From NCBI GenBank assembly GCA_048013815.1, contig CM106586.1:4030001-4094000 (forward strand): a stretch of 64,000 nt of DNA, in the 5' to 3' direction. Shown piece by piece: positions 29,042 to 38,480 of the stretch. The position numbers were made by a program, and so were the translations under genes. The number at the start of each line of letters is the position of its first letter. Position 1 is the first letter of the stretch. The DNA comes from Setoptus koraiensis (Eukaryota > Animalia > Arthropoda). The notes below the pieces were generated by a model. That model was given only the letters and a program-made list of their open reading frames with translations. It did not search any database and was not told the DNA's origin.

Positions 29042-32000
29042 ATGTTTAGTCAACCACCGCCTCACATTCCCACCGCGGAGGAGCTGGAGGAGAAGGCAAA
29101 GAAATGGCAACAACTACAAATGAAACGATATGCCGACAAGAGAAAATTCGGATTTGTCGACACCCAAAAAGAGGAGATGCCACCCGAGCATATAAGAAAG
29201 ATAGTCAAAGATCATGGCGACATGACTAGTAAGAAATTTCGTCATGACAAACGGGTCTATTTGGGTGCGCTTAAATATATGCCTCATGCAATATTAAAAT
29301 TGTTAGAGAATATGCCAATGCCTTGGGAACAAATAAGAGATGTTCCTGTTTTATATCACATCACTGGAGCTATCACCTTTGTGAATGAGATACCCTGGGT
29401 TATAGAGCCAGTATTTACAGCTCAATGGAGCACCATGTGGATTATGATGAGGAGAGAAAAACGTGATAGGCGTCACTTTAAACGTATGAGATTCCCCCCG
29501 TTCGATGACGAGGAACCACCCCTGGACTATGCTGATAACGTTAATGATGTAGAACCTCTAGAGGCCATTAGGCTAGAACTTGACCCCGAAGAGGATGTCG
29601 CTATTGCCAGTTGGTTCTATGAACATAAACCTTTGTTAGATACCAAACACGTTAATGGATCTACATATAGAAAATGGTTTCTAGAATTGCCACAAATAGC
29701 AACCTTGTACAGGCTGGCTGATCAATTATTGACTGATTTAGTCGATGACAACTATTTTTATTTATTCGATCAAAAATCCTTCTTCACGGCAAAAGCGCTC
29801 AATATGGCCATACCGGGCGGACCCAAATTTGAACCTCTCATTAAGGAAGTTTATCAGGCAGATGAGGATTGGAATGAATTCAATGACATTGATAAGATCA
29901 TCATTAGGCAGCCTATCAGGACGGAATACCGTGTTGCATTTCCTTACCTTTACAATAATAACACTCAATACGTGCATCTATCCAAGTAAGTAGGAAATTC
30001 TGTTATGCAGTAACAAAGAATTCTTTTTTCATTCCACATAACGTAGGGCTGATTGTTTTTCTAAGATTGATTGGCAACTTCGGCAAAGGCGTGTGGTAAA
30101 AAAACAGTACTTGAACTGATGAAATCTCGATTTCGCACGGTTCACCTATTGCTACGTTCAAGCCATCCCTGTCTCTTATAGGTTATAACGAAAGGGGAGC
30201 GAACTAAGCGCTGACAAACAATATCATATTGTTGAATGTCCATCTATTATTTTTCTACCGCCACTAATCATTCGAATGCATCGTCATTTTTCTTCTTACT
30301 TACGTCTACCAGGTATTACTCACCACGTGTTGTCTATATCAAGACGATGGATCCCAATCTTCCTACATATTACTACGATTTCTTGATAAACCCCATTCCT
30401 GCAACTCGGAGCAAGTTGCCTGATTTTATAACCGACGATGATGACGATTTCATCTTGCCCAGAGATTTAGAGCCCTTCTTTTCAGAGTATGATCTGCAAA
30501 CAGACAACACATCGAATGGTATTTCCCTCCTCTGGGCTCCCAAACCATATAATCTCAGGTCTGGAAAGACCAAGAGAGCCGTTGATGTTCCCCTAGTCAA
30601 AGAGTGGTATCGCGAGCACTGTCCACCTGGAATGCCTGTCAAAGTAAGAGTTTCCTATCAGAAGCTACTGAAGTACTTTGTTCTTAACTCACTGCATCAG
30701 CGACCTCAAAATCCCAAAAAGAAGAGATATCTCTTCAGGTCATTTAAAAGTACCAAATTCTTTCAAGCCACAACACTTGATTGGGTGGAAGCAGGTCTAC
30801 AAGTCTGCCGTCAGGGTTATAACATGCTCAATTTACTAATACACAGGAAAAACCTCAACTACTTACATTTAGATTATAATTTTAACCTCAAGCCAGTGAA
30901 AACTCTCACAACCAAAGAAAGAAAGAAATCGAGGTTTGGAAACGCTTTTCATCTCTGCAGAGAAATTCTTAGATTGACGAAACTGATTGTCGATAGTCAC
31001 GTTAACTATAGATTAAATGAAGTAGACGCATTCCAGTTGGCCGATGGTCTTAACTATATATTTACCCATGTCGGCCAATTAACTGGAATGTATCGTTATA
31101 AGTATAAGTTGATGAGACAAATCAGAACATGTAAGGATCTAAAGCATCTCATATACTACCGCTTCAATACTGGTCAAGTCGGCAAGGGTCCTGGTTGTGG
31201 ATTTTGGGCCCCATGCTGGCGTGTCTGGCTCTTCTTCATGAGAGGTATAACGCCATTGTTAGAACGTTGGTTAGGAAACTTGCTATCTCGCCAGTTCGAA
31301 GGTAGACATTCTAAAGGTGTAGCCAAAACAGTGACCAAACAAAGAGTCGAAAGTCATTTTGATTTGGAACTTCGAGCAGCTGTAATGCACGATATAGTCG
31401 ATATGATGCCGGAGGGAATCAAGCAAAATAAGGCTCGAACTATCCTTCAACATCTCAGTGAGGCTTGGCGTTGCTGGAAGGCAAATATACCTTGGAAGGT
31501 TCCGGGTTTACCGATAATGGTTGAAGATATGATTCTCCGTTATGTCAAGATGAAAGCTGACTGGTGGACGAATACAGCTCACTACAATCGTGAGAGAATA
31601 AGACGAGGAGCAACAGTCGACAAAACAGTTTGTAAGAAAAATTTGGGTCGATTGACTCGATTATATCTTAAATCAGAACAAGAGCGCCAGCATAATTATA
31701 TCAAAGATGGGCCTTATGTCAGTCCTGAGGAAGCCGTGGCTATATATTCCACGACTGTTCACTGGCTCGAGAGTAGACGCTTCTCTGCAATACCATTTCC
31801 GCCGCTTTCGTACAAGCATGACACTAAATTACTAATATTGGCACTGGAACGTTTGAAGGAAGCTTACAGTGTAAAGAGTAGACTGAATCAGTCACAAAGA
31901 GAGGAGCTCGGACTCATTGAACAGGCCTACGACAATCCTCATGAGGCTCTTTCTAGGATCAAGAGACACCTATTGACCCAGAGAGTATTCAAAGAAGTCA

Positions 32001-35000
32001 GTATCGAGTTTATGGATCTTTACTCACATCTGATTTGTGTCTATGAAGTTGAGCCGTTGGAAAAGGTGACCGATGCCTACTTAGATCAATACCTTTGGTT
32101 TGAGGCTGATAAGCGAAGACTGTTTCCAGCATGGATCAAACCTGCTGATTCAGAACCACCTCCTTTACTAGTCTACAAATGGTGTCAAGGTGTGAATAAC
32201 CTGCAAGATGTTTGGGACACATCTGACGGCGAATGTAATGTTCTGCTTGAATCTAAATTTGAAAAAGTTTACGAAAAGATTGATCTCACCCTCCTCAGCA
32301 CACTATTGAAACTGATAGTAGATCACAACATTGCTCATTATATGACATCAAAGAACAATGTTGTAATCAACTACAAAGATATGAATCATACTAATCAATA
32401 TGGACTCATAAGAGGCCTTCAATTCGCTTCATTTATCGTTCAATATTATGGATTAGTGCTTGACCTGTTGTCACTCGGATTGACTCGAGCATCAGAGATG
32501 GCTGGGCCTCCGCAAATGCCAAATGATTACCTCTCCTATCAAGATGTGCAAACTGAAACTATCCATCCTATAAGGTTATACTCACGTTACATAGACAAGA
32601 TTTACATGTTCTTCCGTTTCACTGCGGAGGAGGCGCGCGATCTCATTCAGCGTTATCTCACCGAACATCCAGATCCAAACAACGAAAACATCGTGGGCTA
32701 TAATAACAAGAAATGCTGGCCCCGTGATGCTAGGATGCGTCTAATGAAGCATGACGTGAATTTAGGACGTGCTGTGTTTTGGGATATTAAGAACAGGTTA
32801 CCTCGTTCTGTCACGACTATACAGTGGGAAAATAGCTTCGTCTGCGTATACAGCAAAGACAACCCAAACCTCCTATTCAATATGTGTGGTTTTGAGTGCA
32901 GAATATTACCGAAGTGTCGTATGGCAGGTGGTGAATTAATCAAGAAGGATGGAGTTTGGAGTTTACAAAATGATCTAACCAAAGAGGGCACAGCTCAGTG
33001 TAGCCTGCGAGTTGATGACGATTCAATGCACAAGTTCCACAATAGAGTGAGACAGATATTAATGGCCTCAGGATCCACAACATTCACTAAGATTGTCAAC
33101 AAATGGAACACCGCACTGATCGGCCTGATGACCTATTACAGAGAGGCTGTGATGAACACTCAAGAATTGCTGGATCTTTTAGTCAAATGTGAGAATAAGA
33201 TACAAACTCGCATTAAGATTGGTTTGAACTCTAAAATGCCTTCCAGATTCCCACCTGTTGTGTTCTACACACCCAAAGAGCTAGGAGGACTTGGCATGTT
33301 ATCAATGGGACACGTGTTGATACCTCAATCCGATTTAAGATGGTCCAAGCAAACAGATGCTAGAATTACACATTTTCGGTCCGGATTGAGTCACGATGCC
33401 GATACAGTCTTACCTAATTTGTTTCGTTACATACTACCATGGGAGACCGAGTTCAAAGATTCTCGGCGTGTTTGGGCTGACTATGCGCTCAAGAGACAAG
33501 AGGCTCTTGCCCAGAACAGAAGACTCACTCTAGAAGATCTGGAGGACAGTTGGGATAGAGGCATACCTCGTGTTAATACTCTCTTTCAAAAAGATCGACA
33601 CACATTAGCGTATGATAAAGGATGGAGAGTCAGAACAGATTTCAAGCAGTACCAAATGCTGAAACAAAATCCATTCTGGTGGACCCATCAGCGGCACGAC
33701 GGAAAATTGTGGAATCTAAACGATTACAGAACCGACATGATTCAAGCTCTAGGTGGAGTAGAGGGGATACTTGAGCATACACTATTCAAAGGAACATATT
33801 TCCCAACATGGGAGGGTCTATTTTGGGAGAAGGCGAGTGGATTTGAGGAGTCGATGAAATACAAGAAGCTGACCAACGCTCAACGTTCTGGATTAAACCA
33901 AATACCTAATCGACGTTTTACATTATGGTGGTCGCCAACAATTAACCGTGCCAATGTCTATGTTGGGTTTCAAGTTCAACTCGATCTGACTGGAATATTC
34001 ATGCATGGAAAAATTCCCACATTGAAAATATCTCTCATCCAGATATTCAGAGCCCATCTATGGCAAAAGATACACGAAGGAATTGTTATGGATCTGTGTC
34101 AAGTTTTCGATCAAGAACTGGATGCCCTCGAAATAGAAACCGTTCAAAAAGAAACAATTCATCCTAGAAAGTCATATAAGATGAATAGCAGTTGCGCTGA
34201 TATATTACTGTTTGCCGCTTACAAATGGACCGTGCACAAACCATCATTACTTGCCGATACTAAGGAGATGACTGATGGGCACACAACAACGAAATATTGG
34301 ATCGATGTACAATTGCGATGGGGCGATTATGATTCTCACGATATAGAGAGGTACGCTAGGGCTAAATTTTTAGATTATACTCATGATAATATGAGTATGT
34401 ATCCATCACCAACTGGAGTCGTTATAGCAGTTGATTTAGCTTATAATCTTCATTCGGCTTATGGAAATTGGTTTCCATCTAGTAAAATTCTTTTGCAACG
34501 TGCCATGGCCAAAATAATGAAAGCTAATCCTGCCCTCTATGTTCTTCGAGAACGTATAAGGAAAGGTTTACAATTGTACTCTTCAGAACCGACGGAGCCA
34601 TACCTTTCTTCTCAGAACTATGGTGAGCTCTTTTCCGATCAAATCATCTGGTTCGTTGATGACACCAACGTCTACCGTGTCACGATCCACAAAACTTTTG
34701 AAGGTAATCTGACGACGAAGCCCATCAACGGAGCTGCATTCATATTCAATCCTAGGACAGGTCAACTCTTCCTTAAGATTATTCACACTAGTGTCTGGTC
34801 GGGCCAAAAGCGTCTCGGACAGTTAGCCAAATGGAAGACGGCCGAGGAGGTGGCTGCCCTAATCAGATCTTTACCTGTGGAAGAGCAACCGAAACAAATC
34901 ATCGTCACTAGAAAAGGAATGTTAGATCCTCTTGAGGTAAGTTAAACTACTCGACACTTGTGGGCTCGACAAAAAACACGTGATTTGGTAACTTGATCCA

Positions 35001-36608
35001 GTTATTATCACATTTGTTCAGCCACATATGAAATTCGTCTTCTCTTTTCATAGTGCTACCTCATGCTGATTACATCCATGAGATAGTCTCCAGTAGAAGA
35101 TACATGGATAATACACTCTATCATCTGAGAACAATTCTTATTTTCGATTCACTCTAATCTTAATCCTTCAATTCTCTGATCTTGTTCCTTTCTCACAAAT
35201 GATCATTCCATTCTAGGTTCACTTGCTCGACTTCCCTAATATTGTCATCAAAGGAAGTGAACTTCAGCTTCCCTTCCAAGCATGCTTAAAAGTTGAAAAA
35301 TTTGGTGATCTCATCCTCAAAGCAACTGAACCTCAGATGGTACTATTCAATTTATATGATGACTGGTTGAAAACAATATCTTCTTACACAGCATTTTCCA
35401 GATTGATACTAATCTTGAGGGCATTGCATGTTAACAATGAACGAACTAAAATCATTTTGAAACCGGACAAGACCACTATAACTGAGCCTCACCAAATTTG
35501 GCCATCTCTCACGGATGAACAATGGATTCAAGTAGAAGTAAAATTGAAAGATTTAATTTTATTGGACTATGGAAAGAAAAACAATGTCAATGTTGCCTCA
35601 CTAACACAATCTGAGATCAGAGATATTATTCTAGGTATGGAAATATCTGCACCATCAGCACAACGTCAACAGATTTCTGAAATTGAGAAGCAAACAAAAG
35701 AACAGGGTCAAATGACAGCTACTACTACTAAAACTGTGAACAAGCAAGGTGATGAAATTATAACGGCTACAACTAGTAGATATGAGACCACTACATTTTC
35801 CAGTAAAACTGATTGGAGATCTCGTGCTATCTCGGCAACAAGCCTATATATAAGATCGGGTCACATTTACGTAGCTTCTGACGACATAAAAGAAACCAGC
35901 TATACTTATGTGCTACCCAAGAATCTTCTCAAGAAAATCGTATTGATATCAGATCTTAGAACACAGATAGCAGGTTACATGTATGGAATAACTCCTCAGG
36001 ATAATCCCTTGGTGAAAGAAATCAGATGTATAGTGATGCCACCACAATGGGGCACTCACCAGACTATTCATCTACCTAACCAACTCCCCAACCATGAAGA
36101 TCTTAATGAGTTGGAACCGTTGGGCTGGATTCACACTCAACCTAATGAACTACCTTATTTATCACCCGAAGACGTTGTCACTCACTCTAAAATTATGTCT
36201 GATAATTCAAGTTGGGAACAGGACAAGACTATCATAATCACTTGTTCTTTCACTCCCGGATCATGCTCATTGGTGGCTTATAAACTCACGCCAAGTGGCT
36301 ATGAGTGGGGAAGAATGCAAAGTTCAGAAAAAGAGATAAACCCTCAAAGTAGATCAAATAGTCATTACGAGAAAGTCCAAGTCCTATTATCCGACAAATT
36401 CTTGGGTTTCTTCTTAGCTCCCGTACATGGTTCATGGAACTATAATTTTGTGGGCGTCAGGTATGATGCGAACATGAAATATCAGTTACAATTGTCAAAT
36501 CCCAAGGAATTTTACCATGAAATTCACAGGCCAGCCCACTTTTTGAATTTTAGTTCACTAGAGGAACAAAACAATACTGGTTTGGATTATGAGAGTTCTT
36601 TCGTTTAA
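29042..36608 (+). CDS. Prp8: Pre-mRNA-processing-splicing factor 8 (U5 snRNP core protein), ~2319 aa
   Basis: Exons 29042-29985, 30313-34936 and 35217-36608 (GT-AG, phases 2 and 0; 6960 nt in total). Hallmark motifs: [59 protein letters not shown], and the Jab1/MPN motif [10 protein letters not shown]. Confidence 0.99.
30034..30219 (+). ncRNA. Candidate snoRNA-like structured RNA in Prp8 intron 1 (target not identified)
   Basis: Hairpin CCACAT/GTGTGG (30034-30096), then an A-rich H-box-like segment (30098-30106), further stems (TGAAC/GTTCA, TCCCT/GGGGA) and ACA at 30214-30216. TGATGA (30117-30122) and CTGA (30211-30214) resemble C and D boxes. No convincing guide was found. Confidence 0.3.
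34959..35107 (+). ncRNA. Box H/ACA snoRNA in Prp8 intron 2; predicted guide for 28S helix 69 pseudouridine (E. coli 23S 1911-equivalent)
   Basis: Fold: 5' hairpin, H box ATATGA (35026-35031), 3' hairpin (lower stem TCTTCT/AGAAGA, upper stem GCTA-CTCATG/CATGAG-TAGT), ACA at 35102-35104. Pocket strands TCATAGT (35048-35054) and CTCC (35088-35091) pair with the conserved LSU sequence GGAG-UA-ACUAUGA. The pocket top is 14 nt from ACA. Confidence 0.8.
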
Positions 36609-36710
36609 GATCACATAAAAAGTTCGAACTAATACACTGCAATTATTTTAGCGATTGGCTGAAACACCCCATACTTTAGGTAAGTTTTCTAAACATTATA
36701 ACTGTTATCT

Positions 36711-36843
36711 GGGCGAAACTCCAGAGTGTCAGCGCTTACCCAAACTGACAGCTTTTGGATTTTGCCAAAATTAAAGGCGACTTTGGAGGACTGTGATGGT
36801 GCAAACCAATGCCTTCATACGTTCCAGCTACTACGCGACAAAC
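36711..36843 (+). ncRNA. Box H/ACA snoRNA copy 1 (intron downstream of the Prp8 stop); predicted 28S rRNA pseudouridylation guide
   Basis: 5' hairpin GGCGAAA/TTTTGCC plus TGTCAG/CTGACA, H box AAATTA, 3' hairpin, ACA at 36838-36840. Guide strands ACTTTGGAGG and CCAGCTACTA pair with the conserved 28S sequence UAGUAGCUGG-UUC-CCUCCGAAGU, and the 3' guide starts 14 nt before ACA. It lies in the GT-AG intron 36680-36916. Confidence 0.85.
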
Positions 36844-36916
36844 TATCATCTTTCATGCTATCACCATATATAACATTTATGAGCAACGACTAATTAACCA
36901 TCTTTTACTTTTACAG

Positions 36917-36933
36917 TGTATGGAGGAATGAAG
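36917..36933 (+). other. 17-nt non-coding microexon separating the two snoRNA-bearing introns
   Basis: cttttacttttacag|TGTATGGAGGAATGAAG|gtaagt, with branch-like CTAAT at 36890-36894. Confidence 0.7.
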
Positions 36934-36973
36934 GTAAGTTTCCCAATCAACTGTTAAAATACTACCATGATCA

Positions 36974-37106
36974 TGGCGGGACTCCAGAGTGTCAGCGCTT
37001 ACCCAAACTGACAGCTTTTGGATCTTGCCAAAATTAAAGGCGACTTTGGAGGACTGTGATGGTGCAAATCAATGCCTTCATACGTTCCAGCTACTACGCG
37101 ACAAAT
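36974..37106 (+). ncRNA. Box H/ACA snoRNA copy 2 (paralog of copy 1)
   Basis: The core 36981-37105 is 123/125 identical to 36718-36842, and flanks diverge just outside the predicted RNA. The basal stem is GGCGGGA/TCTTGCC. ACA is at 37101-37103. It lies in the GT-AG intron 36934-37224. Confidence 0.85.
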
Positions 37107-38480
37107 TATAAATCTGAAACTCAAATCAAGACTCACCTAACTTCGACATCAATTTATTAAATCAATTATCATCAGCTTCTAATAGAATGAACGCCTTTAT
37201 CTCTCGTACACTTTTCCATTACAGTACTTAAGGCAACCCCGACGATAAATTCCGATTGAAATGTTGATCTCAAACCAAAGCGAGGATTTAAGGTGTCATC
37301 GATCACTCAAACTGAGAGCTCTAGTAATTCTTGTCTATAAACAGACCTTTTCTGTCTGATAATGGCATCCAATAACGTCTATTCTACCGCGCCCACAGCC
37401 CATGTTAGAGACCAAAGGTATATACCTGGTATATCATTAGATATCCGTTACACCGTTTGCAGTGGATGCACATAGGCAGGAGAATGATGAACTAAAACAT
37501 TTGTTGTGATTATTAGGCAATCAATCAGTCAACCAATGTGTAGAAAATTTGTAATAATAAATAACACACTTCATGATTTACAACACAGTGAATTGCGAAA
37601 TATATTTAGCGTGGAGATTTGAATCACACATATCGTTGATGTGACTTGGTCATGTTACGATAAATCAACGAAAAAAATGAATTGTGATATCGCATGATTG
37701 TCTTCAATGTATTAAAAATTAGATGCAAATTCAGATTGTATTCTTATTAGGATTATTATTATTATTACTATAAGTGGCCCAATTGATGAATTAATTTATA
37801 GTAATAATAGCTAAACGCACTGGCGCTAATAACGTATCGGTAGTGTTACGTTACAGACTTTACTGCGCTCGCATTTTGAGACGCATTGTGTAAATTAGAA
37901 CATATGATGCTTTGTTTACAACTTTTTTAAGCATTGTGAGGCATTAATGCGCAAGCTCATTGCAATAATTTAATAAAACTCAAGTCAATATTATTGCTGT
38001 TGGCTTTGGAAAAAAATGGAAATAAATTCAAACACTGGCAGAACAGCCGATCCACATTTTGTTGAATTAATAATCAGGACGAATCGAAACGAATTACTGT
38101 CGTAGCTACAATCGGTCTTCCTTAACCGTCACAATAATAATCTCATCAATTTTCATTCATTATTACAATAAAATGAACAATCGAATGGAACAAAATAATA
38201 GAGAAAATAATTTTGAAAAGAAGTATCTTATCTAAACAAGACGCCCTACGACATAAATCATGATTTAATCAGACTCACTGTTTTTGCATATATTTACATT
38301 CATGCATTCATAAAGACTTTAGACTAATCCAGAGTATTCGCATAATAGCAACCATTTGCCATCCATTTATCAGGAGAAGACTTAGGAACTTATATATAGG
38401 ATAGAGAATAAACATTATACATATATTTTATCTAAATATACATAGTTATTATTAGATAATATAGTTATTCAGATAGAAGG

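Follow-up and report, generated by a model that had tools for sequence, protein, structure and literature searches.

Two probable paralogous box H/ACA snoRNAs in candidate introns downstream of the Prp8 stop codon in Setoptus koraiensis

The intron-encoded box H/ACA small nucleolar RNAs (snoRNAs) of animals (dyskerin/Nop60B, Nhp2, Nop10, Gar1) are the closest described counterparts of the elements considered here, a duplicated pair of ~133-nt sequences that follow the Prp8 gene in a 64-kb stretch of Setoptus koraiensis DNA (contig CM106586.1, positions 4,030,001 to 4,094,000; hereafter the window, to which coordinates refer unless another contig is named). [quoted passage not shown] Unlike them, the elements match no Rfam family, leave three target nucleotides unpaired, place very long guide helices of 10 + 10 bp over a lower stem of 3 bp, and have a 5′ hairpin without an open pocket. 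Their predicted target, again unlike those of the animal snoRNAs, is not a mapped pseudouridine in Drosophila.

A second set of counterparts is formed by the vertebrate UHG, GAS5 and SNHG hosts and by Drosophila snoRNA:Psi28S-1135a-f, a paralogous H/ACA cluster on chromosome X (PMC13228274 supplement). Tandem paralogues, very short non-coding exons and a predicted spliced product with no conserved open reading frame (ORF) are common to these clusters and to the locus described here. However, unlike the UHG, GAS5 and SNHG hosts, the present unit begins 71 nt past the end of a protein-coding reading frame, whose 3′ untranslated region (3′UTR) it may be, and unlike Drosophila Psi28S-1135a-f its target would lie 18 nt upstream of CCC[U]CAGG (M21017:4423). 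Transcripts that host snoRNAs are enriched among the targets of nonsense-mediated decay (NMD), and in human cells NMD is best predicted by a 3′UTR intron more than 50 nt past the stop (PMC5238794). The locus would resemble such NMD-sensitive hosts in having an exon junction beyond 50–55 nt past the stop, if Prp8 is the host.

The sequence anatomy, the conservation between paralogues and with an orthologue, and the complementarity to rRNA are seen directly in the DNA, and they support the presence of two paralogous H/ACA-type guide RNAs, with apparent selection on both the RNA and the donor sites. The full explanation that we favour, a duplicated, intron-hosted H/ACA pair in the 3′UTR of Prp8 that guides modification of a site in large subunit (LSU) rRNA, has in our estimate a probability of about 0.5. 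In its general character the locus would be a snoRNA pair hosted by introns in the ordinary way, and only its position would be unusual. The features of the region, all on the + strand, are as follows.

36609–36679, + strand: spacer of 71 nt from the Prp8 stop to the first donor; either a Prp8 3′UTR exon or exon 1 of a host transcript distinct from Prp8.
36680–36916, + strand: candidate intron A, 237 nt, with donor AG/GTAAGT, a CTAAT branch-like sequence at 36890–36894, a pyrimidine-rich tract and a CAG acceptor.
36711–36843, + strand: putative H/ACA snoRNA copy 1, 133 nt, from fold, pair counts, rRNA match and repeat boundaries.
Parts of copy 1: H box 36768–36773; 3′-pocket guide strands 36780–36789 and 36824–36833; ACA 36838–36840.
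36917–36933, + strand: candidate micro-exon of 17 nt, TGTATGGAGGAATGAAG, bounded by CAG/ and /GTAAGT and predicted from the sequence only.
36934–37224, + strand: candidate intron B, 291 nt, with donor AG/GTAAGT, CTAAT at 37179–37183 and a CAG acceptor.
36974–37106, + strand: putative H/ACA snoRNA copy 2, 133 nt, from repeat, fold and pair counts.
Parts of copy 2: H box 37031–37036; guide strands 37043–37052 and 37087–37096; ACA 37101–37103.
37225–37580, + strand: candidate terminal exon; its AATAAA at 37556–37561 is the first that would be exonic.

We infer splicing, RNA accumulation, modification and, above all, continuity with Prp8. In the proposed mechanism, a + strand RNA polymerase II transcript would be spliced at 36679/36917 and 36933/37225, and the excised introns would be debranched and trimmed by exonucleases to the H/ACA ribonucleoprotein core, leaving two RNAs of ~133 nt. 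The pocket of the 3′ hairpin would pair with LSU rRNA flanking GG[UU]C and offer one U to the pseudouridine synthase; the 5′ hairpin, mostly self-paired, is probably structural only. The host would most probably be the Prp8 pre-mRNA, extended because its proximal poly(A) site is weak or missing, in which case the introns would be 3′UTR introns and the transcript would end after the AATAAA at 37556.

The two copies form a direct repeat of 140 nt with 95% identity (36707–36846 and 36970–37109). Apart from this repeat, the two intervals share just an 18-nt donor region, and the remaining flanks are unalignable. Because the intervals align only in donor and element, they appear to derive from an old tandem duplication of ~260 nt that decayed except at the donor and a block of ~133 nt; the survival of these two parts is the pattern that would be expected from selection on a splice site and an RNA. 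A BLAST search of the window found no third copy. A preliminary description of this DNA, made from the sequence alone, had placed one ~133-nt copy in each intron, which holds, the copies being 95% identical within diverged flanks. Its coordinates for the stop, the donors, the acceptors, the 17-nt exon and the AATAAA at 37556 were all exact on re-checking. As a separate observation, the sole ATTAAA hexamers near the Prp8 stop (36770 and 37033) are hinge sequences of the snoRNAs that overlap the H box; if used as poly(A) signals, they would cut the snoRNA precursor.

The closest relative available is represented by contigs L001 and L124 of the Logan assembly SRR33593474, whose DNA in this neighbourhood is 77.5% identical to that of the window over 3.5 kb. 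On L001 the C-terminal Prp8 exon encodes a protein 98% identical to that in the window and the stop falls at the same place; the spacer from stop to donor measures 179 nt, against 71 nt in the window, and is mostly unalignable. Past this spacer, TTAGGTAAGTTTTCC is conserved in L001, as are snoRNA positions 1–50, which comprise the 5′ hairpin (96% identity; two differences from copy 2). The contig stops at RNA position 50 (L001:7768–7817), one base before a column in which the window copies differ. Since a k-mer assembler would break there if two or more copies were present, the end of L001 at the repeat suggests that the relative has at least two copies, although this is an inference and not an observation; a search for a second copy in the relative, made with a spurious ORF overlapping the snoRNA, found nothing.

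The predicted folding accords with the H/ACA class. The minimum free energy structure of both copies is a hairpin-hinge-hairpin-tail, a shape confined to the + strand (z = -1.7 and -2.3); for the reverse complement, shuffled sequences fold equally well (z = +0.6 and +0.9). An H box, AAAUUA, which fits ANANNA, occupies the single-stranded hinge at RNA positions 58–63, 2 nt past the 5′ hairpin. The ACA comprises RNA positions 128–130 and is followed by 3 nt; the identity between the paralogues stops 3–4 nt beyond it, and the mature ends are predicted accordingly. In a canonical open-pocket model, neither copy loses any of the 27 pairs, nor does the partial L001 orthologue. Between the copies, A6-U52 is replaced by G-U, A7-U51 by G-C through changes on both sides, the 3′ apical loop contains one difference and all others are at the ends, RNA positions 6, 7, 51 and 96 being those by which the copies can be distinguished; in the L001 orthologue, C20-G37 becomes U-G. 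The compensatory and compatible changes in the basal stem and the difference in the apical loop are thus present as the preliminary description had reported them. All substitutions are unpaired or preserve pairing, and none falls in the guide strands or boxes, a pattern compatible with the H/ACA model and not proof of it. No CAB-like UGAG was found by eye in either apical loop, so there is no pointer to a Cajal-body RNA.

Targets were sought by scanning the 18S, 5.8S and LSU rRNAs from two complete metagenome rDNA units with the geometry of the pocket. The 3′ pocket pairs over 10 + 10 bp (one G-U) with LSU rRNA at UAGUAGCUGG[UUC]CCUCCGAAGU, which may alternatively be written UAGUAGCUGG[U]UCCCUCCGAAGU; Rfam places the match inside LSU_rRNA_eukarya in both units. 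Its score is 19.5, compared with 10–12 for the next best site and with a mean of 8.7 (sd 1.4, maximum 13.5) when the guide strands were shuffled 300 times. Pairing in the guide begins at C114, which precedes the ACA as the 14th nucleotide upstream. A pairing of 10 + 10 bp at this distance had been proposed beforehand, and it is borne out on real LSU rRNA and stands above the shuffles, with a non-canonical gap of 3 nt. The substrate could be either the first U (at 14 nt) or the second (at 15 nt, with a U-U mismatch atop the helix).

Both target Us, positions 955 and 956 of the Rfam LSU model, form a 2-nt single-stranded junction between two long-range helices, and the 23-mer TAGTAGCTGGTTCCCTCCGAAGT is present in more than 120 metagenome contigs. 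In the 28S rRNA of this species the target sequence is predicted to be UAGUAGCUGGUUCCCUCCGAAGU, with GCUGG[UU]CC as the modified site. An offset of 13 puts the yeast pseudouridines Psi960, 966, 986 and 990 on U; by this presumed offset the target corresponds to about U942/943 of yeast 25S rRNA, which is not known to be a yeast pseudouridine.

Information on the fly comes from Table S3 of Song et al. (PMC9997552), which holds 735 candidate sites and gives 21-nt contexts for the classical “Ofengand” sites. M21017 positions 4348, 4423, 4429, 4433, 4463, 4468 and 4480 in that table are 28S-1060, 1135, 1141, 1145, 1175, 1180 and 1192, respectively, an offset of 3288 that is anchored by 4348 = 1060 and 4480 = 1192; the names 1060, 1135 and 1192 are confirmed. 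The predicted site falls at about M21017:4405, and the table (PMC9997552) has no row between 4368 and 4423 and no context containing GCTGGTTCC or TAGTAGCTGG. The idea that the element is an orthologue of Drosophila snoRNA:Psi28S-1135a-f was rejected, site 1135 being CCC[T]CAGG, 18 nt downstream of the predicted one. The remark in the preliminary description that the target U may be lineage-specific stands, the site being unlisted in the fly pseudouridine sequencing (Psi-seq)/Ofengand table.

From the fold, the boxes, the rRNA pairing and the conservation in the relative, we conclude that the elements are very probably real box H/ACA snoRNAs. That they are encoded in introns is also probable, at a somewhat lower level of confidence. 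Both donors match the metazoan 5′ splice-site consensus at nine of nine positions, and GGTAAGT is scarce, with five occurrences on the + strand of the window. Each snoRNA lies singly between a donor, a CTAAT, a pyrimidine tract and a CAG acceptor, whose AG dinucleotides are at 36915–36916 (intron A) and 37223–37224 (intron B). The candidate lengths of 237 and 291 nt resemble those of the Prp8 coding introns (246 and 277 nt).

The gene preceding the elements is on the + strand, ends at 36608 and is identified as Prp8 by Pfam domain matches in three ORF blocks, which together cover PRO8NT, PROCN, RRM_4, the U5 and U6 snRNA-binding domains, domain IV, JAB/MPN and PROCT.

29042–29989, 30236–34945 and 35223–36608, + strand: Prp8 ORF blocks.
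35223–36608, + strand: last Prp8 coding exon (domain IV core, JAB/MPN and PROCT), from Pfam matches.

Its TAA stop occupies 36606–36608, and L001 has TAG at the equivalent codon. Whether Prp8 itself is the host we consider an evenly balanced question. In its favour, the spacer measures just 71 nt, and neither AATAAA nor ATTAAA occurs in the spacers of the two species. In addition, the last coding intron of Prp8 contains, at 34959–35107, an H/ACA-like RNA with two hairpins, a hinge and an ACA near its end (z = -1.8); its identity with the L001 sequence is 89%, and conservation is lower in the remainder of the intron. Prp8 would then already be the host of one H/ACA-like RNA, which supports its being the host of the downstream pair.

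Evidence that weighs against the favoured reading concerns both the host and the RNAs themselves. With regard to the host, the spacer contains the variant hexamers CATAAA (36614) and AATACA (36631), and L001 has an AGTAAA overlapping the stop; some 20 nt downstream of both the CATAAA and the AGTAAA there is a CA with U-rich sequence. Because such variant hexamers with CA and U-rich sequence occur directly after the stop, Prp8 mRNAs could end before the donor. The argument from poly(A) signals is weak, since several other ORF ends in the window likewise have no canonical signal nearby. The candidate terminal exon contains no ORF of note and has no homologue in contig L124, which leaves it without comparative support.

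The alternative that survives best, though we consider it unlikely, is that the snoRNAs belong to an independent non-coding host of the UHG/GAS5/dUhg type, which would start within the ~71 nt past the Prp8 stop, while a variant signal immediately past that stop would serve for the polyadenylation of Prp8 mRNA. The CATAAA at 36614 and the AGTAAA of L001, with their downstream CA and U-rich sequences, would suit this arrangement, as would the poor conservation of the spacer (71 versus 179 nt) and the absence of a conserved ORF from the spliced exons; one snoRNA per intron combined with tiny exons is a hallmark of dedicated host genes. On the other hand, a mere 71 nt would have to accommodate the 3′ end of Prp8, a promoter and a first exon, no core-promoter-like motif common to the spacers of both species was seen, and the last coding intron of Prp8 already carries an H/ACA-like RNA.

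As to the RNAs themselves, the pocket contains three unpaired rRNA nucleotides (U, U and C) where two are canonical, and the lower stem of the 3′ hairpin, at just 3 bp, is likewise non-canonical. In the 5′ pocket, one strand is paired to the other over 7 bp, three of them G-U; because of this mutual pairing the 5′ hairpin is probably a closed stem. For the 5′ pocket, whose target would take the form UCCAAAAGC-UN-CUCUGGAG, the best scores were 12.0, within the range of the shuffles (maximum 12.5) and not common to both rDNA units. Covariation amounts to one double and two single compatible changes among three sequences and is statistically empty, being equalled by 254 of 500 shuffles. An Rfam search, which had been proposed in the preliminary description, matched no snoRNA family, neither in the window at gathering score nor in a 1.2-kb region or the element alone at E ≤ 10, and the matches obtained, with a viral pseudoknot, a miRNA and a nematode C/D model, were due to chance; this result bears on membership of a named family and not on the H/ACA class. 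The target U, moreover, is not a reported pseudouridine in Drosophila (PMC9997552 table).

The comparison with more distant relatives points in the same direction. Two of these, L002 and L003, have the same three-block Prp8 structure (C-terminus 72% identical) and no comparable element after Prp8; in one of them a convergent EF-hand gene lies 348 nt past the Prp8 stop. A match to CCAGCTGCTGATACA in L002 was dismissed, as it has no partner strand. Since neither relative has a counterpart, the arrangement appears to be young and restricted to this lineage. Synteny in other relatives, which the preliminary description had raised, is found in part: the donor and the 5′ hairpin are kept in L001, and neither L002 nor L003 has them.

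The deviations of the RNAs described above could be taken to mean that the copies are decaying or non-functional, the products of a neutral recent tandem duplication or snoRNA pseudogenes that give rise to no stable RNA or modification. The lack of an Rfam match, the 3-nt gap, the 3-bp lower stem, the closed 5′ pocket and a target that is unmodified in the fly would all accord with such an origin. It is nevertheless improbable: the flanks have diverged past alignment while the 133 nt are still 95% identical and all changes are compatible with the structure, an orthologous element is kept in a species with ~22% divergence in neighbouring DNA, and a guide match of 20 bp would not persist by chance.

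Less probable again is the possibility that each copy is a mono-cistronic, unspliced snoRNA gene, the conserved AGGTAAGTTT upstream being a promoter element or a coincidence. Many snoRNAs of nematodes, plants and yeast are independently transcribed, and the motif is conserved 31–40 nt upstream of each copy. Yet this motif is the one that matches the metazoan 5′ splice-site consensus at nine of nine positions, and its start lies at variable distances from the 5′ end of the RNA (33, 42 and 40 nt), which suits a donor and not a promoter with fixed spacing; a CTAAT, a pyrimidine tract and a CAG acceptor also follow each copy.

Least probable of all, and very unlikely, is that 36609–36679, 36917–36933 and 37225 onward are 5′UTR exons of the downstream WD40-like gene (ATG 38481) and that this gene is the host: it lies on the same strand and 5′UTR introns are frequent sites of snoRNAs, but homology with the relative begins abruptly at 37857 with 1.6 kb of unrelated DNA upstream in the relative, an extra intron of at least 0.9 kb would be needed at a locus where introns are ~250 nt, and the AATAAA at 37556 and several further AATAAA intervene. 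Because the homology between the WD40-like gene and its counterpart in the relative starts only at 37857, the segment 36609–37856 would be a unit separate from the downstream gene.

If Prp8 is the host, its mRNA would carry both introns in its 3′UTR, and splicing might both free the guides and mark the mRNA for junction-dependent decay. The first predicted junction would lie 71 nt past the Prp8 stop (179 nt in L001), beyond the limit of the 50–55-nt rule, a distance that is relevant only if Prp8 is the host. Autoregulation of splicing factors by SRSF2-type feedback through 3′UTR splicing is known; NMD in Drosophila is largely independent of exon junctions. The preliminary description had proposed a coupling of splicing capacity to ribosome modification with autoregulation by NMD, a proposal that the analysis leaves unsupported, the position of the junction more than 55 nt past the stop being the sole fact in its favour, and we consider it improbable. 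Were it true, high spliceosome capacity would lower Prp8 mRNA and raise guide output, and low capacity would retain the introns and spare the mRNA. A core spliceosome gene would thereby have a homeostatic loop with a link to a pseudouridine that is lineage-specific yet located in a universally conserved LSU junction.

If the RNAs are real, they would constitute an unannotated H/ACA guide with a predicted pseudouridine at a universally conserved 2-nt LSU junction, and, the site being unmodified in the fly, they would bear on changes in rRNA modification among arthropod lineages. The locus is also a simple test case of whether a protein-coding mRNA can carry 3′UTR snoRNA introns in a chelicerate-like genome, and it would reveal whether such introns alter the stability of the host mRNA.

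Further short complementarities to rRNA occur at the locus. Within the first Prp8 intron (29990–30235), GGTTCACCTA at 30139–30148 is a 10-nt perfect complement to the conserved 3′ end of 18S rRNA (TAGGTGAACC) in both rDNA units; this intron also has a GACAAAC near its end, ~20 nt before the acceptor region, and its fold has no clear H/ACA shape (z = -0.4). In the candidate terminal exon, AGATATCCGTT at 37439–37449 is an 11-nt perfect complement to conserved 5.8S rRNA sequence near the 5′ end, as present in one of the rDNA units (L016), with no suitably placed C/D or H/ACA boxes, and may be due to chance.

Finally, contig L124 of the relative matches the window only from 37857 onward, and the 1.6 kb that precede this point upstream of the WD40-like gene (L124:1–1638) have no similarity anywhere in the window. 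Either an insertion or a break in synteny would therefore seem to separate Prp8 from the WD40-like gene in one species of the pair. Exactly where the homology between the two species starts, there is a block of ~130 nt (37857–37985, equivalent to L124:1639–1770) with ~95% identity, far above that of its surroundings. The block lies ~500–620 nt upstream of the ATG of the WD40-like gene, has a z of about 0 and no Rfam match, and probably represents the gene's promoter or 5′ leader.

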